From Scyliorhinus canicula (taxonomy: Eukaryota): a DNA stretch of 64,000 bases. The stretch lies in assembly GCF_902713615.1 (NCBI RefSeq), contig NC_052158.1:30483990-30547989 (forward strand). Direction: 5' to 3'. Below, piece by piece: positions 32 through 49,558 of the stretch (positions are counted from its first letter, which is position 1; every line of letters starts with the position of its first letter). The notes beneath the pieces were generated by a model. It saw only the letters and a list, made by a program, of their open reading frames with translations. It made no database searches and was not told where the DNA came from. The position numbers and the translations under genes are program-made.

Positions 32-126
32 TCTGAATCGTCGCGTTCCACAATTACCAGAGAAGACGATTGCTTTAAAAGATCCAACTTTATCGTCGCG
101 TACTGTACATACTCTATTGCAGTAGT
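32..126 (-). CDS. Cytoplasmic exon 8 with ITIM-consensus VQYATI, 95 nt
   Basis: Acceptor CTTCCTGTTTTTACAG, donor AGA|GTGAGT; reads TTAIEYVQYATIKLDLLKQSSSLVIVERDDS; matches (S/I/V/L)xYxx(I/V/L). Confidence 0.75.
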
Positions 127-3100
127 CTGTAAAAACAGGAAGATTAGATTAGTCTAGATTGGCATGGTGCATCTTCAGGAACCTCGCGTTCATCAGTTGA
201 TGTTTCTGCAAAAGATCAGCTATTCTATCTCTTTAAACTGGGATTAAGTACCACAGAACATAGAATCATAGAATTGCTACAGTGTAGAAGGAGGCTATTC
301 AACCCATCACGTCTGTACTGACCCTCTGAAAGAGCACCCTACCTAGGCCCCATTCCCCCTCCCTATCCCCATAAACCTACCGAACCAGCACATGTTTGGA
401 CACAGGGGCAATTGAGCATGACCAATACACCGAGCCCACACATCTTTGGTGTGAGACTTTGGAGAAAATAAATAAGCAGACTATGCAATCAAACTCTGAA
501 GCATAGGTGAACTCAAACACGGTCCGGATGTATGTTTGCAGAGACCTTGGGGGGGGGGGGGGGGTTCATAACCAATAAACATTTGGTCTTCTTCCATCTT
601 GTACTCCTTTACAATTCTTAACATCTCGTAGTCGTAAAAGTGAAATGTATAATTCCTATCGATCGACATAGATAATTGTTAAAGATACCAATCTATTAAA
701 TCTATCCATGCTGCAGTTACCAAATTGTGTTCTGTTCCAGTTGCTACTGTAGAAAGCATGATATGGAATTTGGGGAATGAAATGTATCTCTTCGGTCTTC
801 TATAACCTGAGACTTCGAAACAATTGCACTTCATTTATATTGCTGCTTACCTCATTCTGTGAATTGTGTAGAGAACTTTGGGAATCTACAAGTACAAATG
901 TAATGGAGCGAAATGTCAGTGAAGTGAAATTCAATAAGGTGCAGCATAATATTCAAAGCGATTGATTGATGTTTGATGAGTGACGCTCAGACATATCGAT
1001 ATGTAGAAAAATAACTAATTTATTTGAGGGATAGCACAGGTATTCAATCGCAGATCAGATTCGAGAGGTTGAATGGTAGTTTCTGTTTCTATCACGTCTG
1101 GTCATGTTTCGCAGTGTCTCCGAGGTTCTTCTCATAGAGCTGATTACTTTGAGTGCATGATGAGCATGAATGTTAACAAACCAACACGGTTCCAGAAACA
1201 GCAAACAGCAATCAGCTAAATGACGAATAGATCATTTGTTTGTATATTTGTGTCTGTCGGTGTGTTTCAATAAACAGTATTAGAAAGTATACTGACATAA
1301 CGTCTTGCTGATTTGTCAAGGAGCTAACTCTAACCTGGACAAGCCGGTATGGCGAGGAAATCTGGCAATGCTGTGCTCCACCCCTGCTACAGGAAGGCGC
1401 CATCATCTATTAAACTCTTGAAGTTAAACTTTGATCTATTTTGCTCCGGAAGCAAGCGCATCAACAATTGAATCGAAGTAACACAAGACAGGGCGACTAG
1501 GGGATTTTCACAGTAACTTAATTGCACTGTTAATGTCAACCTACTTCTGACAGTAATATATTATTATTATTGACTACTATTATTGAGAGACACTTATTTG
1601 TGCAAAGTCCAACTGACATTCATTTGAAACTAATAATAGCTGGATTACTTCATGAAAGCTAATGGGTAAAACAGCAAGCGCAGTCCTTTCATACCAACTA
1701 AATTAGCGATCACCAATGACCAAGCTGCATTGATAAAATCGTCACAAGTTTCTGGAATCAGCATTAATTAAAACTTGCACATATAGACAGATAGGTTTTA
1801 TAACTGTAGATAGATGTTGTGCTCGCTCTCGTGAAGGACTCTTCCGTTACTTGCGCGAGGTCCAATGTAGCATGGGCGCAAAAAGAGCTCCAGAAAAGAT
1901 CTCCCGTGTAAAATTTCCATTTCCCGGAACTGATATCTCATCACAGGACAATGATCCGATAGCGCAGTCGATTCTGCTTAATTTCCTGCGGGGAGAGCAG
2001 GTACACGAGAAATTGAACTAAGGTCCCTTCAAACTAAATTCACATGTGGACCCCTCACTGGGGAGGATTTAGTCTTATCTGCCTGGGGCCGACTGAAATC
2101 AAGACCCCACAAGTGGCATCATAAGTCCTCTTCTAGGCTCACTCAGAACAGCTGTGCTTTACTGTTTGCCGTGCCTCAACGAGCGGTGTTCTCTCGTCAC
2201 CCAGTCAGAACGTCATGGCGCCGAACCTCACTTCAGCTTGAAATGGAGACCGACACAATACTCAAATGCTGCGAGAGTGCTGCTCTGCTAAAGATGTGTA
2301 TTTCAGTTGGGATGCCATTTACAAAGAACCCGTGGCTATATTGGAAGAGGAAAATCAGAGTTCTCAACTAAAATCACTAAATCGCATCACGGATTGTTTT
2401 TCGAGGGGCCCTGCTATGCACAAACTGGTGTTGCTGACACCACTGCACCAGATCTTCGTCGGCTATAAAGCACTCCATGGCCTCCTGTGGTTATGTGAGG
2501 CGCTAGATTAATGCATTTTATCGTGCTGGAGCATAAGTTTGCAACACCGTGGTACTTGAGAACCTATAAAGGATAGATATTTCCAAAAGATCTCCCACCA
2601 GCTGATAGGACGTAGAAAGTTCAGCATACAACATGCATACTTATAATACTTCTAATGAACACAATATGTCATAGCCATGTCAAACATCGAAATTAATTCG
2701 TATTGAGTTACTTACCCATCAGGTTACCCATCGAATTGCTGAATGTCTTTAGGCTGGGGGGAGGAATAAAATAACGTGTTAGGAAATGAGAAGGAAAAGC
2801 AATCATTTGTTTTTCTACATTTTTCTTATACATTAGTGTGGACAGTCAGGTAACTGCGTCAAGGAATCTGCACCCACTTTCGAGGACTAATCAGTACGAC
2901 CACCCCCTCCCCCCCCCCCTTCCTCCCCCATCACAAGGACCAGAGAGCACTCCCAGAAAATGTTTGAGAAGCCAATACTAGAGGAATCCTTTATAGACGA
3001 ATAGAACAGTACAGCACAGAACAGGCCCTTCGGCCCTCGATGTTGTGCCGAGCCATGATCACCCTACTCAAACCCACGTATCCACCCTATACCCTTAACC

Positions 3101-6100
3101 TTACTTTTTAGGACACTACGGGCAATTTACCATGACCAATCCACCTAACCCGCACATCTTTGGACTGTGGGAGGAAACCGGAGCACCCGGAGGAAACCCA
3201 CGCACACACGGGGAGGATGTGCAGACTCCACACAGACAGTGACCCAGCCAGGAACTGAACCTGGGACCCTGGAGCTGTGAAGCATTGACGCTAACCACCA
3301 TGCTACCGTGCTGCCCTTTCACCAACTACTCGAGATGTAGCGACCCTGTCTCGATATGATATGGAGATGCTGGCGTTGGACTGGAGTGAGCACAGTAAGA
3401 AGTCTTACAATTCCAGGTTAAAGTCCAACATGTTTGTTTCAAACACTAGCTTTTGGAGCACTGCTCCTTCCTCAGGTGAATGGAGAGGTCTAGATAATCA
3501 AGGCATCATGCCCATGCTTGCCCAATAACACCACCCTTCATGGTGAACATTGACAAACAATGATAATCAAACAATGAGCATAAGATAACCATACCAATGA
3601 TTGCAATTATACGAGCTGACAACACTGGGAGAAATGTTAATTTTGCTTGCTGGTGGGAGACCAAGAACAGGATCAGAGGGAAGAAAATAAAAATACCCGG
3701 GATGCTGGAAATCTGGAAATTAAGTGCTGGAAAAACTTAGCTGATCTGGCAACATGTGTGAAGAGGAAAATAGAGTTCATATTTCAAATCCGAATGGCTC
3801 TTATGTGAAGCTACGATCAGAGGGAACATCAGTTTTTGCCCCACCGAATATTATACCCTGATGGAGCCAAATTAGTTGGTTCTCAAAGCTTTCTTGGTAA
3901 CCACTCCCCTCAGCATCTGGAAGGGGAGGTCATTTGTCGATTTTGTTTTTGCAAGATCAAGGGTAATACAAGGCATGACGCATAATTGGCATTCTACCAG
4001 ATCACTCGTGGTTCCCGCCTTGGCTTAAACCAAGCTCCCGCTTTTTCAATCTGTGCCACAGCACTGCAAAAGCCAGGAGTCGGTGTCACGGTGGTATTAC
4101 CCCTGTGCTGACACGGGGGTTATGCTGCAGCTATGCAAAACTTGGTTTGACCCCACTTGGAATACTGCGAGCATTTCTGGGCACCACACCTTAGGAAGGG
4201 TATTTTGGCCTTTGTTGAAGTGCAACGTAAGTTTTAAAAAATGATACCTGGACGACAGTGGTTAAGATATGAGGCGAGATTACTCAAATTAGGCTTGTTT
4301 TCGCTTAATTTAGAAGGTTCAGGCATGATCTGATCGAAGTATTCAAGATATTAACAGGGAAAGAGAGGGTAAATGAAGATAAATTATTTCCACTGGTTGA
4401 AGATTTCAAAACTAGGGGCCATAGTCTGCAAATTAAGGCTTGACCATTCAGGGGAGATGTTAGGAAGCACTTCTTCACCCAAAGGATGGTAAATGTTTGG
4501 ACCTCTCTCCCATAACCCGTAGTTGAAGCTAGAACAGCTATATAGAATATAGAACATACAGTGCAGAAGGAGGCCATTCGGCCCATCAAGTCCGCACCGA
4601 CACATTTAAGCCCTCACTTCCACCCTATCCCCGCAATCCAATAACCCCCCCTTAACTTTTTTGGTCACTAAGGGCAATTTATCATAGCCAATCCACCTAA
4701 CCTGCACATCTTTGGACTGTGGGAGGAAACCGGAGCACCCAGAGGAAACCCACGCAAACACGGGGAGAACGTGCAGACTCCGCACAGACAGTGACCCAGC
4801 AGGGAATCGGAGCAGAATAGGTCAGAGATAAGATTAATCGGACTAATGAACCCCACAGCTATCACTTGTTCTTATATGTTGCTCCCACAGGGCAGAATTA
4901 CCGAAATACATGATTGCTGCAGAAGGCAGAGGACCCACCGTGTCTGCACTTGCACTTGCTCTCCAAATAACCATCATGACTTAAAACCATTCCCTTGCAT
5001 TTTTGTTCAACTAATCATCTCATGCCCTCTTGAGTGCCTCGATTGGATCTACCTCCACCACACTTCCAGTCAGGCAGTGCATCTCAGAACCGCACCACCC
5101 ACTGTCTGACAATTTTTTCTCACATCGTTTTTGCTTTTTCTCCAAATCACTTTCAAACTGTGCCCTTTCGTGCTTTTTCCCCCCAATCCCCTCTCTCTAA
5201 ACTCTGCCCCCCCCCCACCCCCATTACTTTTTAGCACTATCAAATCTCATCTTAGCCTTCTCTCCAAGGAGAACATCCTAACCTCTCCAATCTATCCTCA
5301 TCAGTGAAGTTTCTTATCTCCGGAACCATTCTCGCAAACCTTTTCTTTGCTCTCTCCAATACGTTCATATTCTGCCTATAGTGGGGAGCCCAGAACTGTA
5401 CACAACATTCCAGCTGACTTCATACACACCCATAATAATACAGAGATTGCAGTGTAACTAATTTCTGCTGACCACAAAATGCACCCCACAGCCATTTCTA
5501 GGAAACTAATACCTATAGGCTAATTGTAAACGTTAATGTTTGCGCCATGTAATTTACCTTTCCATTGGTGTATAGATCGGCTGTTCTTCTTGGTTTGTAT
5601 CCTTCAACACAAATTAAACTGAATTAGTGATTTATTGCATTGACGTGAAATATAATCACGCACAAAGTGAAACATTCTTCCGGGCCATGCACTGAGAATC
5701 ATGCCCTGAATTTTTCATAAGATAAAATATTTATCCAAGGAAATCAACATGTATATAGATCAAGAAATTCTAATTACATTAAAGGAGTACTTCCTCTATG
5801 ATCTACCACGCATATATATAATATGTATCATACTCACAGACACACACTCTCAGACACAGATACACACTCACAGACACAGACACACTCTCAGAGACACACA
5901 CACTCTGACAGACACACACACTTGCAGTATTGTATCAAAGTATTGCAAGCTTTCTTCAAATTGTTAAAAATGATAACAGCACTGAAACTGTGTTGGATGG
6001 ATGAGTGTTTCGAATGCAGGCACCGAACCTAATTTGAATAACATGTAACAACTTAGTCTCACTATCTTTAACATGACACTAGGAGCCATTGAAATCAATG

Positions 6101-9100
6101 AAATATTCTTATGATGTTCAGCATGTTGCCAACGCAGAGTGAGAAACCCCCTTTTGCCCCTGTGTTCACCAAATCACCAACACATTGGGACCAAATGAGT
6201 CTTCCCACTATACTAACATCACCGACAGTAAAAGGACATTGTGCGTAATTTTATTAAAGGTATAGAACATACAGTGCAGATTTATATAGTATACATATAT
6301 CATGATATGATAATGCTTTTGCACAGTATTTTTCATACTGTTAAAAGCTCACTTACTTCTAAATACACCAGCTCTAATTATTTCTGCTATCTTTGAGGAC
6401 CTAGGCAGTAAGTACTCCATGTTTAAGCCAGTGCCAAGAATATGGACGAGAACATCAACAGCAGACCCTACGAGAGCGGGTTGTATTTGACAGCTAGACA
6501 CCAAGCATTGATGGCAGGTTTACCTCAAATAGAACTGTTATTCTTGGCAGAATATTGGCTCATTACACATCCCATCGCTAATCTGACATAGACAGATTAT
6601 TAATCAGTGTGGGAATCTATACTTACGGGGATGAGGTGGGAAAGAGGATTATCACATCAGATAAGTCACCATCTCACTCAATGACCGAACAGATGCGTAA
6701 TGGGCCGAATTCTGAAACAGGACCATCAACCCATCGAGTCTGCACTGACCCTCTGAAAGAGCATCCTACTACAACTCCCCTGTCTTAACCCCATAACCGC
6801 ATCTAACCCGCACATCTTGGACTGTTGGAGGGAACCGGAGCACCTGGAGGAAACCCAGGCAGATACGGGGAGGAAGTGCAAACTCCACACAGACAGTGAG
6901 CCAAGGTTGGAATCGAATCCTGGTTCCTGACATCATGAGGCAGGAGTGCTAACTACTATGCCGCCATGCCTCCCTCACCTTATGGTCCTTGTTCAGTGTG
7001 CCATGATAGGACAGTGGTTAGCGCTGTTGCTTTACAGAACCAGGACCCGGGTTCAATGCCTGCTTGGGTCACTGCCTGTGCGGAGTCTGCAAGTTTTCCC
7101 ATTTCTGGTTGGGTTTCCTCCGGGTGCGCCGGTTTCCTCCCATAAGTCCCGAAAGACATGCTGTTAGGTGAGTTGAGTATTCTGGATTCTCCCTCTGTAC
7201 CTGAACAGGAGCCGGGATAGGGTGATTAGCGGATTTTCACAGTAACTTCATTGCAGTATTAATGTAAGCCTACTTGTAACATTAATAAAAATAATTATTA
7301 TGTATTCATTCTCAGCAATAGCCCAGTTATTTTTATGACCTAATATGTGATTTAATAAAGGGGCACTTGGGGAATTACTGTTCCAAACCTTCGCGGGGAA
7401 TTTGGATTTCAAGTGATAAGATTTGTTTTTTTTGTTACGTTACTTACGAGGCCTTGCAGGGGTGTCATTATATTATCTGCAAAACAAATGATAAATATGA
7501 AACAATTGGGTATACGCCCTGGCACTGCACATGGCGAGTATGAGGTTACACTGTCTTTAATAATGGCAATCTATGATAGGAAAAACATTGTAAGTATGAG
7601 TATTGTTTGCAGGGAGTGTTTGCTATATATAAGATGTCTCATAAATATATCCATTAGACTGTTTAGCCATTCCAGTTTTGCTTAGTTTGTAATCCTGAAT
7701 GGTGGAAGTTGTGGATTACAAGCTGCAGAACCTGAGAACAGAAGCTCTTCCTGCCATTGTTATCCAATACTGAGAGAGTGCTGCATTGTCAGAGGTTCCT
7801 CATTCAGTGAGATGTCAAAGAGAAAAACTGTCTGCCTGTTCTCATGGACAAAGGATCCCATTACACCATTCAAACAAAGCAGGATGTTCTTGCTCGGTGC
7901 TGTTTGACAACCTTCCTGTAAGCAAACCCGGTGAGAACCAATGTAATGCCTAATGGTCTCAGTTGCTTCTTGTTGGACCTTGTGTGTAAAAATTATTTAA
8001 TTGGTCACCCAGTGCTTTGGGGGATAGTTGGGCGATATAACTACAGCCTATTTCTTATAGATGCAAGAGAAGAAGGTGTAATTGCATATTGTGCATTTTA
8101 AGGTATACTTCCAGCAGATAGTGGCCAGGAGTTTTAGCATGGCAGGGATCGCCATCCTACCATCTGAGAAAACTCCACGGGAATGTGCTGCCGGTCCTGC
8201 AGCCATATCAAGCTCCGATAGATGGATGCAGGCGGGACTTCCCCCGCTCACCTGGGCGGATGTCCCGATTTAGAGAGCTGCCAGCCAATCTCCACACCCT
8301 AGAGCGCCAAAGGCTGCAGTGGTCAGGACTGGGAGTGCACTCTGTTCCCAAAGCCGAAGTCCCAGGATTTCAGGGAAAGGTGCATTTGTGGATCTCATGG
8401 AAAGAAGGGTAGGGATGGCCTGGGAGTCATCAATTTTTTATAAATACTTTTGCGGAATATCGGCGTCGCTGGTTAGGCCAGCATTTATTGCCATTCCCTA
8501 GTGGCCCTTCAGAAGGTGGTGGTGAGTTGCCTTCTTGAAGCACCGGAGTCCTGGAGGTGTAGGTACACCCACTGTGCTGTTAGGGAAGGAGTTCAAGGGT
8601 GTTGCCCCAATGTCAGTGAAGGAGCGGCGATATATTTCCAAGTCAGGGTGGTTAGTGACTTGGAAGGGAAGGTCCAGGTGGTGGGATGCATTATCATCTG
8701 CTGTCTTGTCCTGAATGGATTTGAATTTGCATTTGCTTATTATCATGTGCATTGAGGTGCAGTGAAAGTACTGATCTGCGAACAGCTCAAACACATCATT
8801 TAGTACACGAAAAGAAAAGAAAATAGTGGGTTTGGAAGGTGCTGTTTAAGGAGCCTTGGTGAGCTACTGCAGTGCATCTTGTAGATGGTACACACAAATG
8901 CCACTGTCGGTGGTGGAGGGATTGGATGTTGTGGAAGGGGACGCAATCAAGTAAGCTCCTTTGTCCTGGATGGTGTAGAGATTCTTGAGTGTTGTTGGAG
9001 CTGCACTCATCCAGGCAAGTGGAGAGTATTCCATTATACTCTTGACTTGTGCGTTGTAGATGGTGGACAGGCTTGGGGGTCACAGGTGGCGAGTTACTCG

Positions 9101-12100: not shown

Positions 12101-15100
12101 CCCCCCGCCCCACCTCCCACCCGTCCAACCCCTCCAGCGTGAGTGTAAAATCCAGGCCCACGTGTACCAAATCAAGTGACTGCACGATAAAAGAAGCAAA
12201 GTTGATTAAATATTTCAACAAAGACAGTTGAAACTATTGCAATTTTAACTGAACCTACTGATAAAATTGTGCGGAACATTGTTTTCCTAATCAATCGTTA
12301 GTGTCTGGGTGAGAGAGGTCAACCGACGCGCAGCCAATTGGAGGCCCATCCGGTTAATATTCAATATTGACTTTGAGAATCCTGATTATCTGGAGTCTCG
12401 TATAAGTCAGAAAAATACGATTGCGACATTAATTGTGACTCCGTTCATACCTAATTTCAAGTCTAAAGTATCTGAGAAGATCAGAGTGGAATTCCTCAGG
12501 TTCCATCCATAAGAATAGAGCCACAGAACAGCACAGCAGAGAAGGATGCTACCGGGCTCTTTTGCAGCGCAGTTGATTTATTTGCACTGCCCTACTCTTT
12601 CCCCACACTCCTGCAATATTCCCTCTTGTTTAAGAACGTATCCCTACACAGATTTTCTTTCCCGACACAACCGAGAGTTCTTCCAATGTGCATTAATACA
12701 TACTGCGGACTGTGAGCCTGTTGAGAGATCGAATTATAAATTTAGACATGGCTTAAATAGGAGAGAAGAAAAAAGTGTTGTCTGAAACTAAACTATACCA
12801 CAGAGGCTGAAGACGTGTATACTGGCACAAATGCCGAGATGTTTTATCATAAAAAACGTTACATGAGTTAATACAACGGCAATGCACGAAAAACGTCGTT
12901 TAAGGGATTCTGTGTTGTTTCTGAACCATAAGCAGGTTTTAAATTGGAAACTTTAGAACAAATTTTTAAGTAAACAATTTAAATGAAATGTTTTGGTTCC
13001 AAAAACCCCATATGAAGTGGGGGTAGAAAGAGCATCTGGGAGCCCTCGGTTGGAATGGACAAGATGGGCACAATTATGTGTCCTTGCCATGAAAAACAAT
13101 TTAACTTACCATCCACGCAAACGATTTCTGGAGAAACCGTGTCTTGTCTGCAAAGGAAGAAAATAGAAAAAAAACTCAATCTTATTTTCTGATAAAGTGG
13201 GACCACACAAACTTTGAGTGCTTTTAGACACAGAAGCAGGCCATTTGGCCCATCATGTCCATGCTGGCCAAAAATGAGCTAAGCAGCCAAATATGACTTC
13301 CCAGCTCCTGCCGTTAGCTCTGAAAGTTGTGCTGCGTATCCAAATCTTTTCTTTTTAAGGGAAGCGTATTTCAGTCTCCACTACCCTTTCATGCAGTGAA
13401 TCGGGAGTCATTTCCCCTTTGGGTGAAAACTCCTTCAATTTCTTTGAATGTTAACTGTGTGCATTTTCAAACAATGAGTGTAGACAGGCTGACAATTACT
13501 CACCTTTGAGACAATTGAACGTCTAATGAACAGGGAGACAAGAAAGAAAATGGGATTACAAAAGATAATTCTTATAACTTAACTTTTATTGCTTATTGCT
13601 GTCAGTTCTGCACTTGGAGGAAAAGTGACTTCCCTTCAAAATAATCAATTATGCCAAGTGATTCAATTTGTATGAGAAACCTGCACCACATAAATGCAAG
13701 GCGATTGAGGGGTGTCTGAGAGAAATTCTGTGAGTCTTTAATGGCACGGAGGAGGGGGTGCATCGAAACAATATTTCTGCTTGTGGGATGAGTGGCCAAC
13801 TGCAGTGTGGATGGACGGATAGATAGATGGATGGTCAGATGGACTGGGGGGCCAATGCATAAGCCAATAATCAGATCTAGTGCAGTAAATTGGTTTGGTT
13901 GCAAAGTGATTATGTCGCTGTGCCAGTAATCAAGAGGCCCAGAATAATGATGTGGAAACATGAGCTGCAAGGCCACCAGAAAAGTACGGGAAGTTAAGTT
14001 CAGTTAAATAAATGGAAGGTAGTAGTTCACTATCACCTTCGCAAGAGCAAGTAGAGCCCATCAATTGACACGTCATGCGGTGCTGGGTGTCCAACTTGCA
14101 GGCAATGCCATCCATGACCTGAAAACAATGGTGTTCTGACCTGGCGGCACTTGAGGTCCCGCAGATGTGCAACGGACTCCTGCTGGGACAGAATTTCACA
14201 TTGGCCCCAAGCCCCATACCCTCCCTGGGAGCCGGAGCCCCACAACCCTAGCCACCTCACGGAACTGCGCTCCGTGCCCTTTCACGCTGCATGGAACAGT
14301 TTGCCGAATGGGCTCCTGCTGCACATCCTTCACCACCTTGCCATTGCCCATTGCCCGTACACATCTTGGCAAACCTTGTTGCCATCCGGCAGCTGATGTC
14401 CCCAGTGGAGTTCCCTCTATGGAGGAGTCCTTCTGCTCCCCTCAATCTTTGGGACATTGGGTGGAGGGTGTTGCATGTGCCATGCAACTGCCAATTAGAT
14501 CATAGAATTAGATCGTAGATCATAGAATTGCACCGGTTCATGGACTCCCAAGAGGCCTGCCTTTTTTGCGACCTTGTGGAGTTCGTGGACCATGCCTATG
14601 TTCAATCTTGAAGGCTACACTTCCGTTTCAGTTTTTTGTCAAAACTTTTATTAAAGCTTTCTTTGCACTTCTGTCCCATGCTCCTGATATGTGGGTAACC
14701 AGTGCATAGAGGGATGGCGAAGGAGGAGGACCTCCTCATGAATCTGTTCCTGGGTCCAGCAAAACTTACAATTAACAGGTCCAGGCAGTGAATCATTGAG
14801 CGGGTTGGCCAAGCCAGCTATTCCACGGCTTAATTCACGGCCAGTATCATTTGCCAAGGGAGCATGCGGTGTCCATGGGCACCAGCGAGGTCTTCAAAGC
14901 CGATATGGCACCGCAGGGTCTGGGGTGCTTTATTGACCTCTTTAATCATCTTTTGTTTTAAATCTTTAAGTTTCCTTTACTCTTTGTTTTTATTTCAGGC
15001 AGTGCCCCTTTAAGGAGCAATTAGTTAAATTCAAAAGAGTTCAAGAGCAATTGAGAATGATCAATAAATGGTGCCTGGCCTGCTGCCCTTACATCCTCTA

Positions 15101-18100
15101 AAAAACTAAAATTAAAAGGTTAGTGAAAGTTACCATGAGCTATTGGCCTTAATTTTTTTTTAATGATCTGATTTACTCATGTCCTTTAAGGGAGGAAATC
15201 TACCGATCTTATGGGCGGCATTGTGATACACTGGTTATTACTGCGGCCTAACAGCACCAGAGACCCGGGTTCAATTCCAGCATTGGTTGACTGTATGGAG
15301 TTTGCACATTTTTTCCATGTCTGTGTGGGTTTCCACCGGGTGCTCCGGTTTCCTCCCATAGTCCAAAGATGTATAGGTTGTGTGGATTGGCCATGATAAC
15401 TTGCCCCTTTGTGTCAAAAAGGTTAGATGGGATTACCTGGTGAGGGGAATTGGGTGGGGGCGTGTGTCTAGGTAGGGTGCTCTTTCAGAGGGTGGGTGCA
15501 GACTGGATGGGCCGAATGGCCTCCTTCTGCAGTGTATGATTCCTACTTGATCTGGCCTAAAAGTGATCAGGCCCAAGACAATGCAGTTGTATTAACTGCT
15601 TCTGAAATAGCATCAAAAGCCCCACAGATATCGCAATGAAAAACTAGAGATGGACAATAAATACTAACCTTGCCAATGATACACACATCTCGTGAATAGC
15701 AGATAAAATGACTGAATATTGACTGGGCAAGTAACAGGCAGCCATGTAATACTGACCATTTGACGTTAACATTAGGAAGGCAAATGAAACAGTGCTTATT
15801 GCAAGGCGAATGGCGTGTCGATGTAGCATTACTTTGCTAAAGTTCTATAGGGTGTTGGTGAGGCCACATGGAGAGTACTGTGTGCAGCTTCGGCCTCCTT
15901 ATTTAAGAAAGATTATAAATGCAGTTCACTCGCTTGATACTTGGGCTGGAGTTGATAGGTTCAAAACATAGAAATATAAAATATAGGAGCAGGGGCAGGC
16001 TATTCCGACCCTCGAGCCTGTTGCACTATTCCTTATGATCATGGCTGATCATTTGTTCTCCTTCGCCCCACGTGCTATATCTAACCCTTGACCTCTACTG
16101 CTTTCTGTGGTAGCCAATTCCACAGGCTGGCCATTCTCTGGGTTAAATAATTTGTCCTCATCTCAATCTTAAATTGTTCTACCCGCAGATCCTTAGACTG
16201 TGACTCCTGGTTTTAGACACCCCACCACCGGGAACATGCTTCCTACATCTACTCTGTCTAATCCAGTTAGAATTTTATAGGTTTCTCCAAGGAAAGGCTG
16301 GACAGCCTGGGTCTGTGCCCATTGGAGATTAAAATATTGAGATATGGTCTTATTGAACCACGTAGGATCCTGAGGAGACTTGACAGGATGGATGCTGAAA
16401 GGATCTTTCCCCTTGTGGGAGAGACTACAACTAGGGGACACTGTTTAAGGGCAAGGAGTCTCCCATTTAAGAAATAAATTGGAAGAATGATCTTCTCTCT
16501 CAAAGGGTTGTGAATCTCTAGGACTCTCGTCCCCAGAGAGCAATGGGGAAAGGGTTAATTTTTTATGGCAGAGGTTGCTAGATTCTTGATTCACAAGGGG
16601 GTCAAGGGTGGGCAGAATAAGGTCACAATCAGATCGGCTATGATCTTACTGAATGGCCGACCAGGCTGACGGGTCCGAATGGTCTGTCCCATATCCTAAT
16701 TCATGGCGGACCAACCTGACAGTGAAAACGTGATCTGCTGCTCATAATTCATATGTTCATATGTCCAGACCGAATTCCTACCTTGCTGCACATACATTAT
16801 TTGGGGCACCTAAATTTTGAGAATTGTGTTGCATGGTTTCAGGGTGCATATCATTTTTTTAAAAATTTGTTGGCAATCTTTCTAATCAATTCATAATTTT
16901 CCTCAGAAGGCGTTAATTAGATTTTTCTTCAAGAAATTTATCTTATAACTATGGAGCTCGTACTAGAGACAGCGTCATGAGTTAACTGAAACTACCTGTA
17001 GATCATGATGCGATGGCAGATTCCCCATCTGTGTTTTTCCAAAACTCTGTTGCTTTCATAGATATTCCCCACACTGCCAACTCGTCACATTACACTTGAG
17101 CCAGGGTTAATTTTCTCTGACCTTCAGGGTGTCACTGGTCAATTATCAATTCTATTACTCCAGTCATTCTCCCATGTATCATGAATACCTCCAATTGAAT
17201 ACCTCCACCATGGAATTTTCAACATATTCCCACGGCAATATTTTACAACCATAACACTTGGAAATCAGCCTGTACCGTTCATTCTGCGTAAATGCAAACA
17301 GTGGAATACAACAAGTAGGAGGATGACCAGTTCCAACCCTGTGCTGATTAATATGATTGACGGTAGATATCTCATCGGTTTTGTTTTCTCTGCAGAGAGA
17401 AGAGAACAAGTTAGACGGGAGCATTGCTTTGGAGGAATAGGACCAGTCCATTCAGCACCCACATAACCATTCCATCATTCAACTAAGTCATGCTTGATCT
17501 GAATCTTAACTCAATCTACCCACCTATTTTCTGCATCCCTTCGTATTATTGTCCGAAGCGTGCTGCAAAACTAAGTCTGGAAGTTTTCAATCTTCCTGAG
17601 CTGACCAGCTTTATTGGCGATAGTGCCAAGTTTCCTGAAATCTTTTTAGCACTGCAACCATTCTATTTACTACGGGCAGAAGAAGTCAAAATCCACCCTG
17701 CCGAATCCGAAAAGTGAAAGACATGCCTGCCTTATCAAATCTCAGAAGAGCCAAAGACAGTGGCTGACTAACTGGCCCACCAAGTCCCAGAGCGGGAAAG
17801 GATAGTGTCTGACTCATTGTCTCATTCAGTCTCAGAGGGGAAATGTCAGTGTCTGACTCACTGTCCACCAAGTCCCAGAGGGGGAAAAGGACAGTGTCTG
17901 ATGCACTGTCCCACCCAGTTCCAGAGGGGGAAAGGACAGTGTCTGCCTCACTGTCCCACCCAGTCCCATAGGGGGAAAGGACAGTGTCTGATGCACTGTC
18001 CCACCTAGTCCCATAGGGGGAAAGGACAGTGTCTGATGCACTGTCCCACCCAGTTCCAGAGGGGGAAAGGACAGTGTCTGCCTCACTGTCCCACCCAGTC

Positions 18101-21100
18101 CCATAGGGGGAAAGGACAGTGTCTGATGCACTGTCCCACCCAGTTCCAGAGGGGGAAAGGACAGTGTCTGCCTCACTGTCCCACCCAGTCCCATAGGGGG
18201 AAAGGACAGTGTCTGATGCACTGTCCCACCTAGTCCCAGAGGGGGAAAGGACAGTGTCTGATGCACTGTCCCTCCCAGTCCCATAGGGGGAAAGGACAGT
18301 ATCTTACAGTGTCCCGCCCAGTCCCATAGGGGGAAAGGACAGTGTCTTGACAGCTCACTCTTCCACCCAGTGCCAGAAGGGTAAACGACAGTACCTAACC
18401 TATAACCAGCTCCAGAGTATGTGGACAATGGCAGTTTTTGCTCATACTACAGGCGGGAGAATCCCTTACCCTTCACAATGAGATGTGTCCCCACTCCATA
18501 TTCCTTGCCGATACCCCTCACTTCGAGGCTGCAGTAATAGAACCCAGAGTCATTCACCTTCAGGTCCCTTATTTGAATGGAAGCGTTAAAAATATCCTTG
18601 TGTTTCGGCCTGAAGATCCGCCCTTTGTATTGGGCTGTTCCGTTAGAAATTTCCGTTCCATTTCTAGAATTCTTGTACCACTTATAATTCTCTTTCCGAT
18701 GAGAGGCAGGGGCTGTGTGGGTACAGGGGATGAACACCGCCTGTCCTTCCAGAGCCTGGATACTGGACAACTTGTGAATAAGTTGAACATCTGTATTCAT
18801 TTTCGGAAAAGGCAGAAAAAATGATGCTATTTGATTTGGTTGAATGGCATCCTTGCATAATGGCTAAAAACAGCAACTTTCAGCGTGAAGGTTTGTTTTT
18901 CTGAGCTCATTTCAGGTTTTGGAATTATGCAACCAACCAGCAGAGTGTTTCCCCACATGTGTACTACTTTGACGTGGAGATTCCTCTGCTTTGAAACACA
19001 AACGGGAAAAGGGGGGATGAAATTGGGGGAAACCAGTGGTGTCGCATTGATCATCTCTGATGCGCAGGGCACCATATTCAGTTACACTAGCTTCAGTAGC
19101 ATTGAGTATAGGATATGTGCTCCAGCAGGAGTTAAAAGCCCGTTTTCCATCACAGTTCAATGTCACCCCTGGCACATGACGATATAAACACGGGGTAAAC
19201 TTCTAAAAAGGATAAGGAGCAGAGGGACCTCGGGATATATGTGCATAGACAGGTGGAGAGAGCAGTTAATAAAGCATATGGTGTGTGATCAATGCACAAA
19301 TTGTTATATATTATGTTTTATATTTGTGACAGTGATGTCATATCTTAAAAATACATACAACCAGTGCACCTACTAAACATGCAATTAAGTTGTCGGAAAA
19401 TAACCATTGCCTTGTTTACAAAGAGATGGCGAGTGGAACATTGTTTTGATTGCAGGAAATTCCCTGGAGAGTAGATAATTTATGAGGGATTGTATTTAAT
19501 CCTAACTAAACTGGTGATGGGACATATTCTCACTATGCATGTGGTTAAATTAATGGGAGGAGGCAGGTCTGTCTGTAGTTTTGCAGTCTGTTGTAGGGTT
19601 TTATGTTGAACCATAGTTTGCCAGAAGATTTCAGTCTTACAAGACAGAAATATTTTCAGGTCGTTCCTAAAAGTGTCTCTCTCTCCAATGGCCTGCATAG
19701 ATAAGCAGGTAACCTGGTTTGTCAATTATGTTTATAAGTGGCATTTGAACTCTACTGGTATTAGTGGCAGGTGTAGATAATAAGGTACAGTTTTTCCTTT
19801 TTTAAAAAACTTTTTACCTGATAATTTTAAAGCTATTCATTTTATGTTAATGTAATTGAATCTATGTTTAAATTACAACTTGTTTTAACAGAAAATATAT
19901 CTGTTCGTCATGACCATCACTCCGAGGGTGAAGGATACTTACCTCACAGTTTTGCAAATTGGAAAATTGTTAGAGTTTTGCGTCCGGCTTCCTAACTTAA
20001 GTAGGGTCCTGTCCAGTATCCTAACAGATTTTGTGGTCTTTAATAGCAGAATACAGTACAAGAGCAAGGAGGTTATACAAGACACTAGTTAGTCATCGGC
20101 TTGAATATTGTGTACAGTTCTGAACTTCACACTATGAGAAATATATGGATGGTCGAAGAGAGCACAGATGTGGTTTACAAAAATGGTTTCAGGAATGAGA
20201 AACAGTTGTGAGGGCAGATTGGAGAGATTGTGACTGTTCACCTTGGAGAAAAGGCTGAGCGAAGATTTTATAGACATATTCAAGATCATGAGGGGTCTGG
20301 ACAGGTTAGATAGGGAGAAACAGCACCCACTCGTAAAAGGATCAGGAAATAGAGTGCACAGATTTAAGGTGCCTCAAAAATTAAACGAATCTGAAGTGAG
20401 AACAGAACTCTGTCACATGAACTTCCGGTGGTGTTCGAGGAGAGCAGCCACGTTAAGGAGAAGCTCCCACCAGTCCGCAATATCGCGGTCTTTTTTGGGG
20501 GTTCCCCGCTGGTTTTTAAAAAAAATTTAAACATCTCCGGGGTCAGTCCTGCCTCCCTCGCCCTGTTAAAGTGTCAAAGCTCTGTTTCATGGAGCCAGAG
20601 GGTTAGAAGGGCGGGAGAGGAGAGACTGGTCCCGGTGGGGTCGGCGGAGCGGCTGCACATGGAGGAGGAGCGGGGATCGTGACTTTGTTCCCTAAGAAAC
20701 AACCTGAAAGCCGGAGGGCTTAAATCGCACAGAGAGAAAAATTTTTCTCTCACTCCCCAGAAAATTTGAAAGGAGCAGCGGGGGCGGAGCCAAATAGAGG
20801 CCGAGGTGACAGGCCCAAAGCCAGGGCGCGATGTAGGTGAGATGTCCGACATCGGATGGCTTTCGCCTAGAATGTGGTAAGAAGACTGAAGCCCGGTCCC
20901 ATGGAAATTCGGGAGGAATACAAAAAAGATGAGAAAGAAGTTTTAAAGAAATCTGGTGAAAGTTCTTTTTTCCCATTTTATTTTTGAAGGAAGAAAAATT
21001 TTTTTTTGTTTTTCCTATTTAAAAAAAAGCCATTGAAGAAGGAAGGAAGGGTGAAAAGAAGAAAAGGGACAAATAATAAGGCATTAAAGGATGCGAAAAG

Positions 21101-27100: not shown

Positions 27101-30100
27101 AGGAGAAGGCACCACTGGAACGAATCAAAGCAAAGTCTGAGGAAGAGATCGGAGAGGCTATGGAGGAGGAATTCTGGTGTGAGGTGCTCCGGAGAGTGAA
27201 TGCCTCCACCTCGTGCACGAGATTGGGGCTGATACAGCAGAAGGTGGTATACAGAGCACACCTTATGAGGGCGAGGATGAGCCGATTCTATGAAGGAGTG
27301 GAAGATGTGTGTGAACGTTGAGTGGGGGTTGGGGGGGGTGAGGGGGGTGGGAGAGGACGCTAATCACGTTCATATGTGTTGGTCCTGTCCAAAGCTAGAG
27401 GATTACTGGAAGGAGGTTTTTAGGGTAATTTCTAAAGTGGTGCACATAAAATTGGACCCGGGCCCCCAAGAGGCCATATTCGGGGTGTCGGACCAGCCAG
27501 GGTTGGAAACGGGTGCGGAGGCAGATGCTGTAGCCTTCGCCTCGTTGATCGCCCAAAGGCGGATACTGATGGGTTGGCGAGCAACCTCTCCACCCTGTGC
27601 CCTGGCGTGGCAGGGGGACCTGTTGGAATTCTTGACTCTTGAGAAGGTTAAGTTTGAACTGAGGGGAAGGGTGGAGGGGTTCTACAATTCATGGGCATTT
27701 TTCATTATGCACTTTCAACAATTGGATAACCGAACATTAGTTGGGGGGGTGTGGATGGGAGGGTTGGAGAAGGGGGGGGCGGTGTGTGTTAATGGTGACT
27801 ATGGGTGATTCCTGATTCCTTTTTGTCATTTGTTTATATTAACATGCGTGCTAATCTTTGGGGTTTGGTGGGAGGATGGGATCATTGTTATTGATTTGGG
27901 GATTGACATATTTGTTACTGATTATTGTTTATTCTTGGTGGGTATAAATTTTGGAGAAAATGAGAAAAAGGAGGAGAATAAAAAATATTTTTTTTAAAAG
28001 GAACTGCTTCACACAGAGAGGGGATCTCATGTGGAATGTACTGTCTGGAAGTGTGATGGGTGCAGGTTCAATCGAGGCATTCAGGAAGGAAATAGATAAT
28101 TATTTGAATAGGAACAATGTGCAGGGATTACGGGTGGGACATCAGGAGAATGGCACTAAGTCATAATGCTCATTTGCAGACACGGTGGGCCAAATGGTCT
28201 CCTGTGCCATAACAAGTCTGTATTTCTGTGATCATTCAGTTGCCTGATATTGAAGGCTTACCTCTCACCGTGAGCCATGTTCCAGCTCCATATTCTTCGC
28301 CCCGTTGCATGACCATCACTTGGCAGTAATACACCCCGGAATCGTTCACCCTCACATCCCTTATTAAAATGGAGGCGTCTCGGGCATGCAGAAAATCCTC
28401 TTTGGACCTGTAGATCCGTCCTCTGTACTCTTTAGTTTCATTGAAAACCTGAGTGCCATTTCGGCTGTCCTTGAACCATTTGTAAGATCCTATCACCTTG
28501 GTGATGTTCACTGTGAAGTTACAGGGGATGTGCACGTCCTGTCCAGCCTCTGCCAGAATGCTGGGCAGCTTTTGAAGAACGCTGAGCTTATCCGCATTAA
28601 TTCCTGGAAAGAAGAGGGGGGACATTTATTCTACTTTATTGGAAGTGTTGTGGCTAAAGGGGAACCCATGAATGCACTGTACTTTGTTGGGGTGCTCTTT
28701 TAGAGGATCAGTGCAGATTCGATGGACCAAATGGCCTCCTTCTATTGATTCTCTGGATTTTATTGATTCTTCTTATCATGAGGGTCATAAAAGTGAAAAG
28801 AGAGGTGTAAAGAGTCTGGAGGAGCTAAAGCAGAGGGTAAAGCTGCTGAAGCGGAGTGAGTTCAGGTATCTGCAGGTTAGGGACCTTGCACGAAAGCTCT
28901 GGAGGGGATTCCTTAGGTTGCTGAGATACACCCTGCTGGAGCGACTGCTGTTTCCGGCTGTGGAAGGGGAGGGAAGAATTAGAGATATATACAAGTGGCT
29001 GGGGGAGCAGGGAGACGAGCGGGTGGTAAAGATCAAGGAAAAATTTGAAGCGGAATTAGGAGGGGCGATCAATTGGGGAGTATGGAGTGAGGCACTGCGT
29101 AGGGTAAACGGGACCTCCTCTTGTGCAAGGATGAGCCTGATACAGTTTAAGGTGGTGCACAGGGTGTTTATGACTCAGGCAAGAATCAGTGGGTTCTTTC
29201 AGGGGGTAGTAGATCAGTGTGAGAGGTGTGGGCGGGGCCAGCAAATCACACGCACATGTTTTGGGGTTGCGAAAAATTGGAAAGATTCTGGGCCGGGAGT
29301 ATTCACGGTCTTAGCCAGGATAGCAGAAGAGGAGGTGGACCCAGACCCTTTTGGTGGCGATATTTTGGGTTTCAGAGAAGCCGGAGCACATGGAGAGGAG
29401 GAAGGCCGATATCTTGGCCTTCGCCTCTCTGCTTGCATGGCGGCGAATTTTGCTGAAGTGACGGTCGGCATTGCCACCGGGGGTAGTGGCTTGGTTGGGT
29501 GACCTGTACGATTTCCTGTGATTAGATAAGATAAAGTATGAGTTGAGGGGCTCTTCAGGGGGGTTTGAGAACAGGTGTGGGGTGTTTGTGACCGTGTTTA
29601 AGGGCTGTTCGTCGTGGGGGAAGCGGGTGAAAAAGTGGAAAAATCTGGACAGACTGTATAGTTGATTGTTGGGAAGTATGTTTCTCAGAGTGTTTATTCA
29701 CTGTAACCTGTTTTGATACATGTAAACAAATACATTTTTTAAAAAGATTTCCTTTTCTGAAGAGCATGAGTGAACCAGATGGAGGTTTACTACGATTAAG
29801 AACAGATCTGAAGGCCTCCACCATCACTGAGACTGGCCTTACATTCCAGATTGATTTTTCACCCATGTCCATCACAGCATGAGTTTGACCATATAGATTA
29901 CCTGACCAGCAACAATCGCCAGTGCGACACCAATATGCGGGAGGGGGAAATAGAGAGGGAGCAGCAAAAGACGAATTCATGCAGGGAAAAATAAGTGCAG
30001 AATAATGGCATAAATATGTCGCCGGGAGCACATTTTTGGGTTCAGATATTTTGGGTTCAGCCTCAAGACACTTACTCGGGTGAGGAATGAAGTCGACAGA

Positions 30101-30448
30101 TAGGAGACAGAATTTGTAGCAAAGGCTGATGGCAACAGCTTCAGTCTTTGCGATATTGAAGTGGGGCAAATTTCTGCTCACAGAGTACAGCATGTTAGAT
30201 GAATAGCTTGAGAAATCAGCAGTAGCAGGGGAGTGGAGAGGGCTGATGAGTGGTGAGTGACATGTGGTGGAGCAAGAGACACTTTGGACAGCAGGGCAGT
30301 GTTTGGGCATTGAAAACTGGTTTGTTTTCCACTGCCCATTCACTGTTGTCTATTTCTGTGCATTCATCCAAGACAGACTTGTAGCATAAGAAATAATGAA
30401 CTTACCCAAGAAGACAGCCAATATCCAGAGGATGGCACTGATGTTCAT
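32..30448 (-). CDS. Multi-exon IgSF receptor with two NKp30 (NCR3)-like V domains, TM and a tyrosine-motif/ITIM tail; 3'-partial (continues past the left edge)
   Basis: 12 exons with canonical AG/GT ends sum to 1139 nt (379 codons + 2 nt) with no stop when read from the ATG at 30448: MNISAILWILAVFLGINA-V1-V2-EKTKPMRYLPSIILISTGLELVILLLVVFHCLHLRRMN-DVQLSQRQDTVSPEIVCVDDTLDLKLDNIMTPLQGLDTNQEEQPIYTPMESLKTFSNSMGNLMDSQSSLHNSQNETTAIEYVQYATIKLDLLKQSSSLVIVERDDS. Confidence 0.8.
851..885 (-). CDS. Cytoplasmic micro-exon 7 (DSQSSLHNSQNE), 35 nt
   Basis: Acceptor CATTTGTACTTGTAG, donor GAG|GTAAGC; phase 1 to 0. Confidence 0.7.
2716..2753 (-). CDS. Cytoplasmic micro-exon 6 (S-LKTFSNSMGNLM), 38 nt
   Basis: Acceptor TTTTATTCCTCCCCCAG, donor TGG|GTAAGT; only the phase-2 frame is open, and it is the frame the chain requires. 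Confidence 0.7.
2999..3316 (-). mobile_element. HE1-type V-SINE, young full-length copy
   Basis: tRNA-like head GGGCAGCACGGTAGC with A/B boxes, V-domain GGGTTTCCTCCGGGTGCTCCGGTTTCCTCCCACAGTCCAAAGATGTG, CR1-like tail. Confidence 0.92.
3358..3491 (-). mobile_element. Single-arm Penelope pLTR fragment
   Basis: Matches the pLTR end of 34291-34411. Confidence 0.8.
4540..4809 (-). mobile_element. HE1-type V-SINE, 5'-truncated
   Basis: V-domain and CR1-like tail. Confidence 0.88.
5558..5601 (-). CDS. Cytoplasmic micro-exon 5 (DTNQEEQPIYTPME), 44 nt, YxxM motif
   Basis: Modest acceptor TTTGTGTTGAAG, donor AAG|GTAAAT; phase 0 to 2 bridges its two neighbours. Confidence 0.6.
5830..5925. repeat. CA/CAGA-rich microsatellite
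   Basis: ACACACACTCTCAGACACAG.. repeats. Confidence 0.9.
6715..6970 (-). mobile_element. HE1-type V-SINE, older copy
   Basis: Diverged V-domain and head. Confidence 0.8.
7005..7300 (+). mobile_element. V-SINE with an L2-type tail
   Basis: tRNA-like head and V-domain, then TTTTCACAGTAACTTCATTGCAG..GCCTACTTGT tail also seen at about 1495-1570, 53085-53195 and 53668-53853. Confidence 0.75.
7448..7476 (-). CDS. Cytoplasmic micro-exon 4 (DNIMTPLQGL), 29 nt
   Basis: Acceptor CATTTGTTTTGCAG, donor CTC|GTAAGT; phase 1 to 0. Confidence 0.65.
8450..11745 (-). mobile_element. CR1/L2-like LINE fragment with Deu-SINE-type 3' tail, split by the CR1 at 9241-10990
   Basis: Same family as 35510-37874; sequence resumes across the insert (GGGGGATTCAGTGAT..GTAATGCCATTGAAT). 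Confidence 0.8.
9241..10990 (+). mobile_element. 5'-truncated CR1 LINE (RT region) inserted into another LINE
   Basis: KSPGLDGI.PRVLKE, NYRPVRLTSVVGK, VYLDFHK, SGVPQGSVLGP.LF, LVRPHLE..VQFWSP; short tandem tail (CTTATG). Confidence 0.95.
12451..12471 (-). CDS. Cytoplasmic micro-exon 3 (DTLDLKL), 21 nt, frame-neutral
   Basis: Acceptor CTCTGATCTTCTCAG, donor TAG|GTATGA; phase 1-1, so the model also works without it. Confidence 0.45.
13110..13147 (-). CDS. Cytoplasmic micro-exon 2 (QDTVSPEIVCVD), 38 nt
   Basis: Very strong acceptor TTTTTTTTCTATTTTCTTCCTTTGCAG, donor ATG|GTAAGT; phase 2 to 1. Confidence 0.7.
13504..13522 (-). CDS. Cytoplasmic micro-exon 1 (DVQLSQ-R), 19 nt
   Basis: Long pyrimidine tract TTTTCTTTCTTGTCTCCCTGTTCATTAG, donor AAG|GTGAGT; phase 1 to 2. 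Confidence 0.6.
13945..15110 (+). mobile_element. Decayed Tx1-type (L1 clade) LINE 3' fragment
   Basis: Residual EDLLMNLFLG-AKL-INRSRQ and WAPQGL motifs typical of Tx1 ORF2 C-termini; interrupted frames. Confidence 0.55.
15213..15545 (+). mobile_element. HE1-type V-SINE
   Basis: Head, V-domain and GATGGGCCGAATGGCCTCCTTCTGC tail. Confidence 0.85.
17276..17389 (-). CDS. Transmembrane exon
   Basis: Strong acceptor CTTGTTCTCTTCTCTCTGCAG; 114 nt, phase 1-1; hydrophobic YLPSIILISTGLELVILLLVVFHCLHL followed by basic RR; the donor G|GTACAG is weak. Confidence 0.85.
17775..18372. repeat. 45-bp minisatellite, about 13 units
   Basis: Unit GGGGGAAAGGACAGTGTCTGATGCACTGTCCCACCCAGTTCCAGA with variants; 15-aa periodic ORF on the minus strand; internal inverted repeat GGACAGTG-7nt-CACTGTCC. 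Confidence 0.95.
18470..18790 (-). CDS. IgV domain exon 2, NKp30/NCR3-like VJ-type domain
   Basis: Acceptor TTTTCCGAAAATGAATACAG, donor G|GTAAGG, phase 1-1, 321 nt. ALEGQAVFIPC, YKWYK, YKGRI, DSGFYYC, EVRGIGKEYGVGTHLIV. Confidence 0.93.
20420..27999 (+). mobile_element. Near full-length decayed L1 LINE (ORF1, endonuclease, RT), antisense in the intron between the two V exons
   Basis: 5' ACTTCCGGTGG start; ORF1 with coiled coil and LENRSRRHNLR (21091-21980); APE endonuclease LWETHL..GVAV (22500-23400); RT pieces VALDAEKAF, GTRQGCP, LYADD (25500-26100); A-rich end near 27990; many stops and frameshifts. Confidence 0.92.
23422..24565 (+). mobile_element. 5'-truncated L1 of another subfamily nested in the host L1 ORF2
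   Basis: L1 ORF2 C-terminus plus 3' UTR and poly-A; 15-bp TSD GAAAAGGTAATTAAG at 23407-23421 and 24566-24580; the host frame resumes after it. Confidence 0.9.
28262..28603 (-). CDS. IgV domain exon 1, NKp30/NCR3-like VJ-type domain
   Basis: Acceptor CTCTTCTTTCCAG, donor G|GTAAGC, phase 1-1, 342 nt. Has B-strand Cys (VHIPC), C-strand Trp (IGSYKWFKD), YRGRI, DSGVYYC and J-like GAGTWLTV. The pattern closely recalls human NKp30 (FLPCSF, IGSVTWFRD, FRGRL, IRDVR, GNGTRLVV). Confidence 0.93.
28790..29755 (+). mobile_element. 5'-truncated L1 3' fragment
   Basis: FRYLQVRD, WSEALRRVNGTSSCARMSLIQFKVVHR, CERCG..HMFW zinc-knuckle region; G-rich 3' UTR and A-rich tail. Confidence 0.88.
30406..30448 (-). 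CDS. Leader (signal peptide) exon MNISAILWILAVFL-G
   Basis: Acceptor CCATCCCCTGCAG then GAAA-ATG; 14 hydrophobic codons; phase-1 donor G|GTAAGT; joins in frame to GINA-DKLSV of the first V exon. The acceptor upstream of the ATG implies a further non-coding exon. Confidence 0.85.
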
Positions 30449-42734: not shown

Positions 42735-43075
42735 GGGGGCAGCACGGTAGCATGGTGGTTAGCATAAATGCTTCACAGCTCCAGGGTCCCAGGTTCGATT
42801 ACCGGCTGGGTCACTGTCTGTGTGGAGTCTGCACGTCCTCCCCGTGTGTGCGTGGGTTTCCTCCGGGTGCTCCGGTTTCCTCCCACAGTCCAAAGATGTG
42901 CGGGTTAGGTGGATTGGCCATGCTAAATTGCCCGTAGTGTCCTAAAAAGTAAGGTTAAGGGGGGGTTGGGTTACGGGTATAGGGTGGATACGTGGGTTTG
43001 AGTAGGGTGATCATTGCTCGGCACAACATCGAGGCCCGAACAGCCTGTTCTGTGCTGTACTGTTCTATGTCTATT
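42735..43075 (+). mobile_element. HE1-type V-SINE, young copy
   Basis: Nearly identical to 2999-3316 and 52459-52815. Confidence 0.92.
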
Positions 43076-49229: not shown

Positions 49230-49558
49230 ACATAGAATTTACAGTGCAGAAAGAGGCCACTTGGCCCATCGAGTCTGCACCGGCTCCTGGAAAAAGCATC
49301 CTACCCAAGGTTAACACCTCCACCTATCCGCATAACCCAGTAACCCCTCCCAACACTAAGGGCAATTTAGCCTGGTCAATCCACCTAACCTGCACATCTT
49401 TGGACTGTGGGAGGAAACTGGAGCACCCGGAGGAAACCCACGCACACACGGGGAGGATGTGCAGACTCCGCACAGACAGTGACCCAAGCCAGGAATCGAA
49501 CCTGGGACCCTGGAGCTGTGAAGCGATTGTGCTATCCACAATGCTACCGTGCTGCCCC
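49230..49558 (-). mobile_element. HE1-type V-SINE
   Basis: Head, V-domain, tail. Confidence 0.9.

Follow-up and report, generated by a model that had tools for sequence, protein, structure and literature searches.

A long-tailed NKp30/NCR3-family receptor gene with two V domains in the catshark Scyliorhinus canicula, and a corrected model that includes its transmembrane exon

We analysed a 64,000-nucleotide stretch of the genome of the small-spotted catshark Scyliorhinus canicula (NCBI RefSeq assembly GCF_902713615.1, contig NC_052158.1, positions 30,483,990 to 30,547,989 of the forward strand), hereafter called the window, which carries a receptor gene on its minus strand. A word-index homology search with the reading frame of the first V exon (V1) gave no match, so an exhaustive HMMER search with V1 was used, covering 1.84 billion proteins. 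It retrieved XP_038671255.1, a catshark "uncharacterized protein" of 387 amino acids encoded by LOC119975535. The leader, V1 and second V domain (V2) of this protein were identical to the translation of the window, and the locus (LR744042.1:30,460,332-30,524,437) overlaps the window by 40,448 nt with zero mismatches. The receptor gene in the window is LOC119975535. Our reading of the stretch, which we hold with good confidence as a whole and together with the mechanism proposed below, is that it contains most of this intact gene, and that it is one of the NKp30/NCR3 receptor genes, with non-rearranging VJ-type V domains, that have expanded in elasmobranchs.

A preliminary description of this DNA had proposed a leader, two V exons, a transmembrane exon and a tail of micro-exons in one open frame on the minus strand, and the splice sites, the exon phases and XP_038671255.1 bore this out. 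Adding the transmembrane exon to the public model of LOC119975535 gives a corrected model of 14 exons and 425 amino acids. All 14 exons are open and flanked by AG/GT splice sites, and their phases chain into one frame. The exons inside the window, seven of them tail exons, sum to 1118 nt (about 373 codons). The three coding exons outside it lie 2.5, 12.1 and 13.6 kb past the window start, again with AG/GT sites and chaining phases. The exons are listed below; positions are those of the window unless another record is named.

30406..30448, minus strand: exon 1, start codon and signal peptide; 14 codons plus 1 nt, phase 1, donor GTAAGT; corresponds to the N-terminus of XP_038671255.1.
28262..28603, minus strand: exon 2, distal V domain D1 (V1); VJ-type, phase 1-1, Cys/Trp/Cys, J-like GAGTWLTV; Pfam V-set E 6e-14.
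18470..18790, minus strand: exon 3, membrane-proximal V domain D2 (V2); VJ-type, phase 1-1, J-like GVGTHLIV; Pfam V-set E 2e-10.
17276..17389, minus strand: exon 4, stalk and predicted transmembrane helix; 114 nt, phase 1-1, mid-membrane Glu in ISTGLELVILLL, RRMN stop-transfer; absent from the RefSeq model.
13504..13522, minus strand: tail exon t1 (19 nt); in XP_038671255.1, with an equivalent exon in zebra shark.
13110..13147, minus strand: tail exon t2 (38 nt), QDTVSPEIVCV; from XP_038671255.1 mapping and zebra shark comparison.
7448..7476, minus strand: tail exon t3 (29 nt); from XP_038671255.1 mapping and zebra shark comparison.
5558..5601, minus strand: tail exon t4 (44 nt), conserved NQEEQPIYTPME segment with a YxxM-type motif; from XP_038671255.1 mapping and tail alignment.
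2716..2753, minus strand: tail exon t5 (38 nt), encodes SLKTFSNSMGNLM; from XP_038671255.1 mapping and tail alignment.
851..885, minus strand: tail exon t6 (35 nt); from XP_038671255.1 mapping.
32..126, minus strand: tail exon t7 (95 nt), canonical inhibitory motif VQYATI; ends at a GA|GTGAGT donor.
42990-43024, 52546-52586 and 54023-54106 in locus record LR744042.1:30,460,332-30,524,437: the three exons outside the window, HDYGYDELNIT onward to the stop codon; mapped from XP_038671255.1.

The product of the corrected model is predicted to be a type I receptor in which a signal peptide is followed by two V domains joined in tandem without a linker, then by a short stalk, a transmembrane helix and a cytoplasmic tail of about 150 residues encoded by ten micro-exons. 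The leader in exon 1 resembles those of the horn shark and white shark relatives. The exon set is not a product of chance, because the same exons, minus the transmembrane exon, make up XP_038671255.1 and the micro-exon layout recurs in zebra shark.

Some details of the preliminary description had to be changed. Its first tail exon (13522) and last base within the window (32) agree with the mapping, but of its 379 codons about 373 were corroborated. Seven of its eight tail exons were corroborated as well, while the remaining one, of about 18 nt, has no counterpart in the RefSeq model or in the white shark protein. It had also ended the gene at base 32; this base marks the GA|GTGAGT donor, and the coding sequence goes on for three exons past the window start. 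The in-frame TGA at 30-28 would matter only if exon t7 were left unspliced. An eighth tail exon does exist at this place in zebra shark; when the catshark t3-t4 intron was searched for a counterpart of the additional exon of zebra, horn and bamboo sharks, there was no convincing match. A six-exon model, in which the transmembrane exon is spliced straight to the exons at 885 and 126 (317 amino acids), is in frame; it was dropped, because the five micro-exons that it leaves out are present in RefSeq and in the orthologues.

Searching the whole 64 kb by tblastn with family proteins detected only two V exons, one transmembrane exon and one tail. Between V1 and V2 there is neither a transmembrane-like exon nor a leader-like one followed by a usable donor, which ruled out two separate genes. 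V2 thus lacks a separate start and V1 a separate anchor, so the two belong to a single gene as first described, and RefSeq and the orthologues likewise join several V exons.

In each V domain, one phase 1-1 exon encodes both the Cys, Trp and YYC residues and the J-like GxGTxLxV strand, which is the non-rearranging VJ type, and D1 and D2 are 48% identical. Among solved structures, the best match was human NKp30 for both V1 (E 4e-15) and V2 (E 2e-12), followed by the T-cell receptor V-alpha (1e-7) and pIgR (1e-8) families. No CD300 or NITR chain was among the top 60 solved-structure matches of V1 and V2. In the search of 1.84 billion proteins, the named single-V matches were NCR3 or NCR3-like proteins from turtles, frogs, newt, lungfish and nurse shark (QTT61904.1).

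The placement of the domains was examined in a maximum-likelihood tree of 71 V domains, consisting of 56 NCR3-like domains and 15 other V-set matches, with support given as ultrafast bootstrap (UFBoot)/SH-like approximate likelihood ratio test (SH-aLRT). All 56 NCR3-like domains, including D1 and D2 and the NCR3-named proteins, grouped to the exclusion of the 15 other matches with moderate support (85/85), the outgroups being unnamed next-best V-set matches, not curated NITR or CD300 sets. Within this clade, the long-tail elasmobranch domains formed a subfamily (87/92). Catshark D1 grouped with the white shark domains (98/92) and is 70% identical to white shark D3, and catshark D2 grouped with the third, membrane-proximal domain of a horn shark three-V protein (P0001; 98/94). 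The NKp30 affinity proposed in the preliminary description thus held both in the structure ranking and in the tree, and a NITR or CD300 alternative is excluded solely by the former.

By these groupings, the membrane-proximal domain is an old, distinct lineage common to catshark and horn shark, and the distal/proximal split is therefore older than the separation of these shark orders. An AlphaFold model of D1-D2 gave confident V-type Ig folds (mean pLDDT 88). The model does not superpose on the paired V-V arrangements of single-chain variable fragments (scFvs) and diabodies (query TM-score 0.37-0.45), which fits a direct, linker-free connection of D1 to D2. When the same model was used for a fold search, scFvs and diabodies were the only matches, their global TM-scores were low, and the result did not discriminate between families.

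Outside the catshark, a homologous transmembrane segment and the same tail were kept in all related models from five other species: white shark LOC121291130, zebra shark LOC132206215, three horn shark loci, bamboo shark and devil ray LOC134346462. Automated names scatter these long-tail relatives as "turtle-like", "SIRP-beta-like", "pIgR-like" and "uncharacterized". At the DNA level, exons were compared with the zebra shark locus, where the order is V, transmembrane, t1, t2 onward; the small exons match those of catshark in size, and the one that carries the immunoreceptor tyrosine-based inhibitory motif (ITIM) is likewise followed by a GA|GTGAGT donor. The first ~38 residues of the bamboo shark protein XP_072406317.1 match three dispersed repeat copies in the window (62661-62738, 49457-49540 and 6880-6972), and its N-terminal extension is probably a repeat miscalled as coding.

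An alignment of eight tails, from sharks and one ray, showed three tyrosine motifs conserved from sharks to ray: (S/P/L)IYxPM, the ITIM (V/I)xYAx(I/L), and an acidic (D/E)x(G/E)Y(D/E)ELN. The catshark forms of the first two are IYTPM, a YxxM motif, and VQYATI. The IYxPM tyrosine motif is present in seven of the eight aligned relatives, the horn shark isoform P0151 having IDTPM. A canonical ITIM is likewise found in seven of the eight, with the forms IQYASI, IQYATI, IQYTEI, VQYATL, IHYATL and IQYAVI in the relatives. The acidic GY(D/E)EL sits 28-30 residues after the ITIM tyrosine in all aligned tails, and the residue at its -2 position is Tyr, Glu or Asp, which is noncanonical for an ITIM. The tail of more than 100 residues with ITIM and YxxM motifs that had first been described was therefore recovered, at about 150 residues even longer than first seen; the inhibitory role attached to it is a matter of interpretation.

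For this role we propose the following mechanism. The receptor would bind a ligand, possibly a B7-H6-like molecule, and Src-family kinases would then phosphorylate the tail. The phosphorylated ITIM, perhaps with the downstream YxxL at tandem-SH2 spacing, would recruit phosphatases of the SHP-1/2 type, and IYxPM could bind the p85 subunit of PI3K. The receptor would thus signal on its own as an inhibitory or modulatory co-receptor, not via adaptors with immunoreceptor tyrosine-based activation motifs (ITAMs) as in mammalian NKp30. We consider inhibitory or modulatory self-signalling the best reading because phosphatase docking at the ITIM and binding of p85 to YxxM can be extrapolated from established ITIM receptors; by this analogy, inhibitory signalling by the LOC119975535 product is plausible.

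Several points count against this interpretation. The support of the NCR3 clade is moderate and its outgroups are uncurated, as described above. The third motif, as read from the tails, does not look like a canonical ITIM, with no hydrophobic residue at -2 (Tyr or Gly). YxxM and the acidic GYxxL could give a positive signal. Finally, the only public gene model skips the transmembrane exon and the donor of this exon is weak, so its inclusion could be inefficient in catshark.

The alternative that survives best concerns the sign of the signal: the tail might be mainly activating or co-stimulatory, with IYxPM engaging PI3K as in CD28 and ICOS, and GY(D/E)EL serving as a hemITAM, a single-tyrosine relative of the ITAM, for Syk. 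IYxPM and GY(D/E)EL are conserved as well as the ITIM is, and the devil ray sequence DDGYDEL resembles the DEDGYxxL hemITAM known from CLEC-2 and Dectin-1. However, seven of eight relatives retain the canonical ITIM, and in sharks the Gly is preceded by Tyr, where a hemITAM has an acidic run. The steady spacing of 28-30 residues to the next YxxL is also typical of docking sites for tandem-SH2 phosphatases, as in KIR, SIRP-alpha and LAIR-1. We therefore regard a mainly activating tail as possible but unlikely.

It is less likely still that the two V exons are mostly used as alternatives, so that single-V isoforms dominate and the tandem protein is minor. All V exons have phase 1-1, the pyrimidine tract of the V2 acceptor is interrupted, white shark LOC121291130 has three-V and two-V isoforms, and the horn shark loci have several isoforms. 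The RefSeq model, on the other hand, joins V1 to V2, and D2 falls in a distinct membrane-proximal lineage that also lies downstream of distal-type domains in horn shark, which argues for a maintained multi-domain arrangement.

The transmembrane exon is where the public annotation departs from the tandem-V membrane receptor that we propose. The preliminary description had expected automated annotation to miss the micro-exon tail; the reverse was found, as the Gnomon/RefSeq model has the tail and lacks the transmembrane exon instead. XP_038671255.1 splices V2 straight to t1 and so has no membrane anchor. If this model were the main product, the gene would encode a secreted two-V protein, either a decoy or non-functional. 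Skipping of the exon preserves the frame, since it is phase 1-1, and its donor ACG|GTACAG is weak compared with AAG|GTAAGG in zebra shark. Against this, the exon has an open frame and shares about 55% identity with the transmembrane segment of white shark (counted from the alignment), with the family Glu and the basic stop-transfer retained, and a transmembrane segment is present in all the related models of the five other species. A conserved tail of tyrosine motifs would also be pointless on a secreted protein. We consider a soluble main product improbable. From these comparisons we infer that the transcript containing the transmembrane exon encodes the functional product and that the RefSeq model reflects an annotation gap or a minor isoform; there could be some degree of real skipping.

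Five of eight relatives have Glu at the mid-membrane position, two have His or Gln and one has Thr. The Glu is found in catshark, white shark, zebra shark and two horn shark loci, the His in bamboo shark and the Gln in devil ray. A conserved polar residue at this position is unusual for an ITIM receptor, and its recurrence in the aligned segments hints at a membrane partner or an oligomer. That the gene is a degenerating or silent copy within a receptor cluster of rapid turnover, as the weak transmembrane donor and the introns swollen by transposable elements might suggest, is very improbable, since every one of the 14 exons has an open frame and canonical splice sites, and the structural Cys, Trp and J residues and the tail motifs are retained.

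The rest of the window contained no further exons of the family, either in the introns or in the 31-64 kb region, and both look like transposable-element debris. The V2-transmembrane intron contains a 45-bp minisatellite at 17756-18392 (14 copies, 84% matches); read on the minus strand, it gives a repetitive frame of 198 amino acids at 17832-18428, which is not a gene. In the 9.5-kb V1-V2 intron, the interval 20000-30000 shows long plus-strand reading frames and a strong positive GC skew, and frames at 9235-10832 in the t2-t3 intron (13110-7476) have the look of reverse transcriptase (YIDDL by eye). A Pfam search of six of the flanking frames gave no match. These intronic frames are probably decayed elements of the long interspersed nuclear element (LINE) type that inflate the gene to 44 kb. 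A hydrophobic minus-strand frame with a central Arg, at 3580-3640 in the t4-t5 intron, looks like a transmembrane segment of an activating receptor; it has no homologue among the family transmembrane segments, is probably due to chance, and was rejected. At 5835-5921, about 230 bp upstream of t4, there is a CA-rich repeat that is imperfect, with periods of 20 and 38.

Shark NCR3 genes have been described before. Kinlein et al. 2021 reportedly identified eight NCR3 subtypes in nurse shark (GenBank MT914154-MT914161), in a family said to be linked to the major histocompatibility complex (MHC). Like the catshark gene, the members of the shark NCR3 family have non-rearranging VJ-type V domains in elasmobranchs. 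The nurse shark protein QTT61904.1, one of the published shark NCR3 proteins, is 39% identical to catshark V1 and falls in the same NCR3-like clade of the tree; it differs in having one V domain of another lineage, a transmembrane Lys and a short tail. A word-index search with the bamboo shark member found no nurse shark entry of the long-tail subtype, which is a weak negative.

Human NKp30 (NCR3; PDB 3NOI, 3PV6, 6YJP, 9FWW) aligns with the catshark V domains over nearly their full length, J-like GxGTxLxV strand included. It has one V domain, a transmembrane Arg that pairs with CD3-zeta or FcR-gamma, and a short tail free of motifs. The catshark protein differs in all of these respects, with two V domains, a transmembrane Glu and no Arg or Lys, and a tail of about 150 residues with three tyrosine motifs. 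It does not have the mammalian-type NKp30 architecture of a single V domain, a basic transmembrane residue and a short motif-free tail.

Annotated NCR3-like genes with several V domains exist in frogs, newts, geckos and bichir, and the Xenopus XMIV genes are amphibian examples. The amphibian proteins resemble the catshark receptor in having tandem NKp30-like V domains on one chain, as in Leptodactylus (three V; P0004), Mixophyes (two V; P0013) and Pleurodeles (two V; P0043). They differ in that their transmembrane segment often has the family Arg, and in that the domains of one frog or newt protein cluster together in the tree, which makes their duplications lineage-specific and unconnected with those in sharks. 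One bichir model fuses a two-V relative with the MHC class III gene PRRC2A, a lead towards possible MHC linkage of the family.

CD28, CTLA-4 and ICOS (YxxM) and PD-1 and BTLA (ITIM plus a second tyrosine motif) are self-signalling IgV co-receptors for ligands of the B7 family. The catshark receptor resembles them in combining a V-type ectodomain, J-like strand included, with tyrosine motifs in the tail of the same chain. The likeness does not extend to sequence evidence of tail homology, since a Pfam search of seven tails found no family and the language-model neighbours of the tail were below a reliable score. Homology of the tail to LST1, SIT1, TLT-1 and similar adaptors, which came up as such neighbours, all below 0.8, was set aside as unsupported, Pfam giving no match.

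Among the family members with a transmembrane Arg or Lys is catshark LOC119975537 (P0015). Its RefSeq model (469 amino acids, on the same chromosome record) looks like two fused NCR3-like genes, one half with a V domain, a transmembrane segment and ITIM-type motifs (MQYAQL, VLYATV), and the other with a V domain, an Arg-containing transmembrane segment (SARILGVF) and a short tail. An NCR3-like candidate with an Arg in the membrane and a short tail thus exists in catshark; its V domain belongs to another subfamily in the tree, and strict pairing with an activating partner, as suggested in the preliminary description, is at most a possibility. A more far-reaching idea, to which we give little credence, is that the long-tail NCR3-like chains keep a primordial mode of NKp30 signalling. 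They would act as self-contained co-receptors for B7 ligands with YxxM of the CD28/CTLA-4 type plus an ITIM, and their mid-membrane Glu would pair with short-tail members carrying a transmembrane Arg or Lys, making the long-tail chain the signalling subunit of a heteromeric V-V receptor.

LOC119975535 is a further member of the already described shark NCR3 family, which is less new than was first implied. It does not represent a new kind of system, as the diversity of shark NCR3 and the amphibian multi-V relatives were already known and the gene was already in RefSeq. What is added here is, first, a corrected gene model in which the transmembrane exon turns a public model without membrane anchor into a 425-residue type I receptor. 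Second, the long-tail relatives, scattered under unrelated names, can be brought together as a coherent, conserved subfamily defined by a tail of ten micro-exons, a triad of tyrosine motifs kept from sharks to rays, and a mid-membrane Glu in most members. Third, an old lineage of membrane-proximal domains is recognized. Early receptors of the NKp30 family may have signalled via ITIM/YxxM tails of their own, and the mammalian form, with its transmembrane Arg coupled to adaptors, would then be one branch only.

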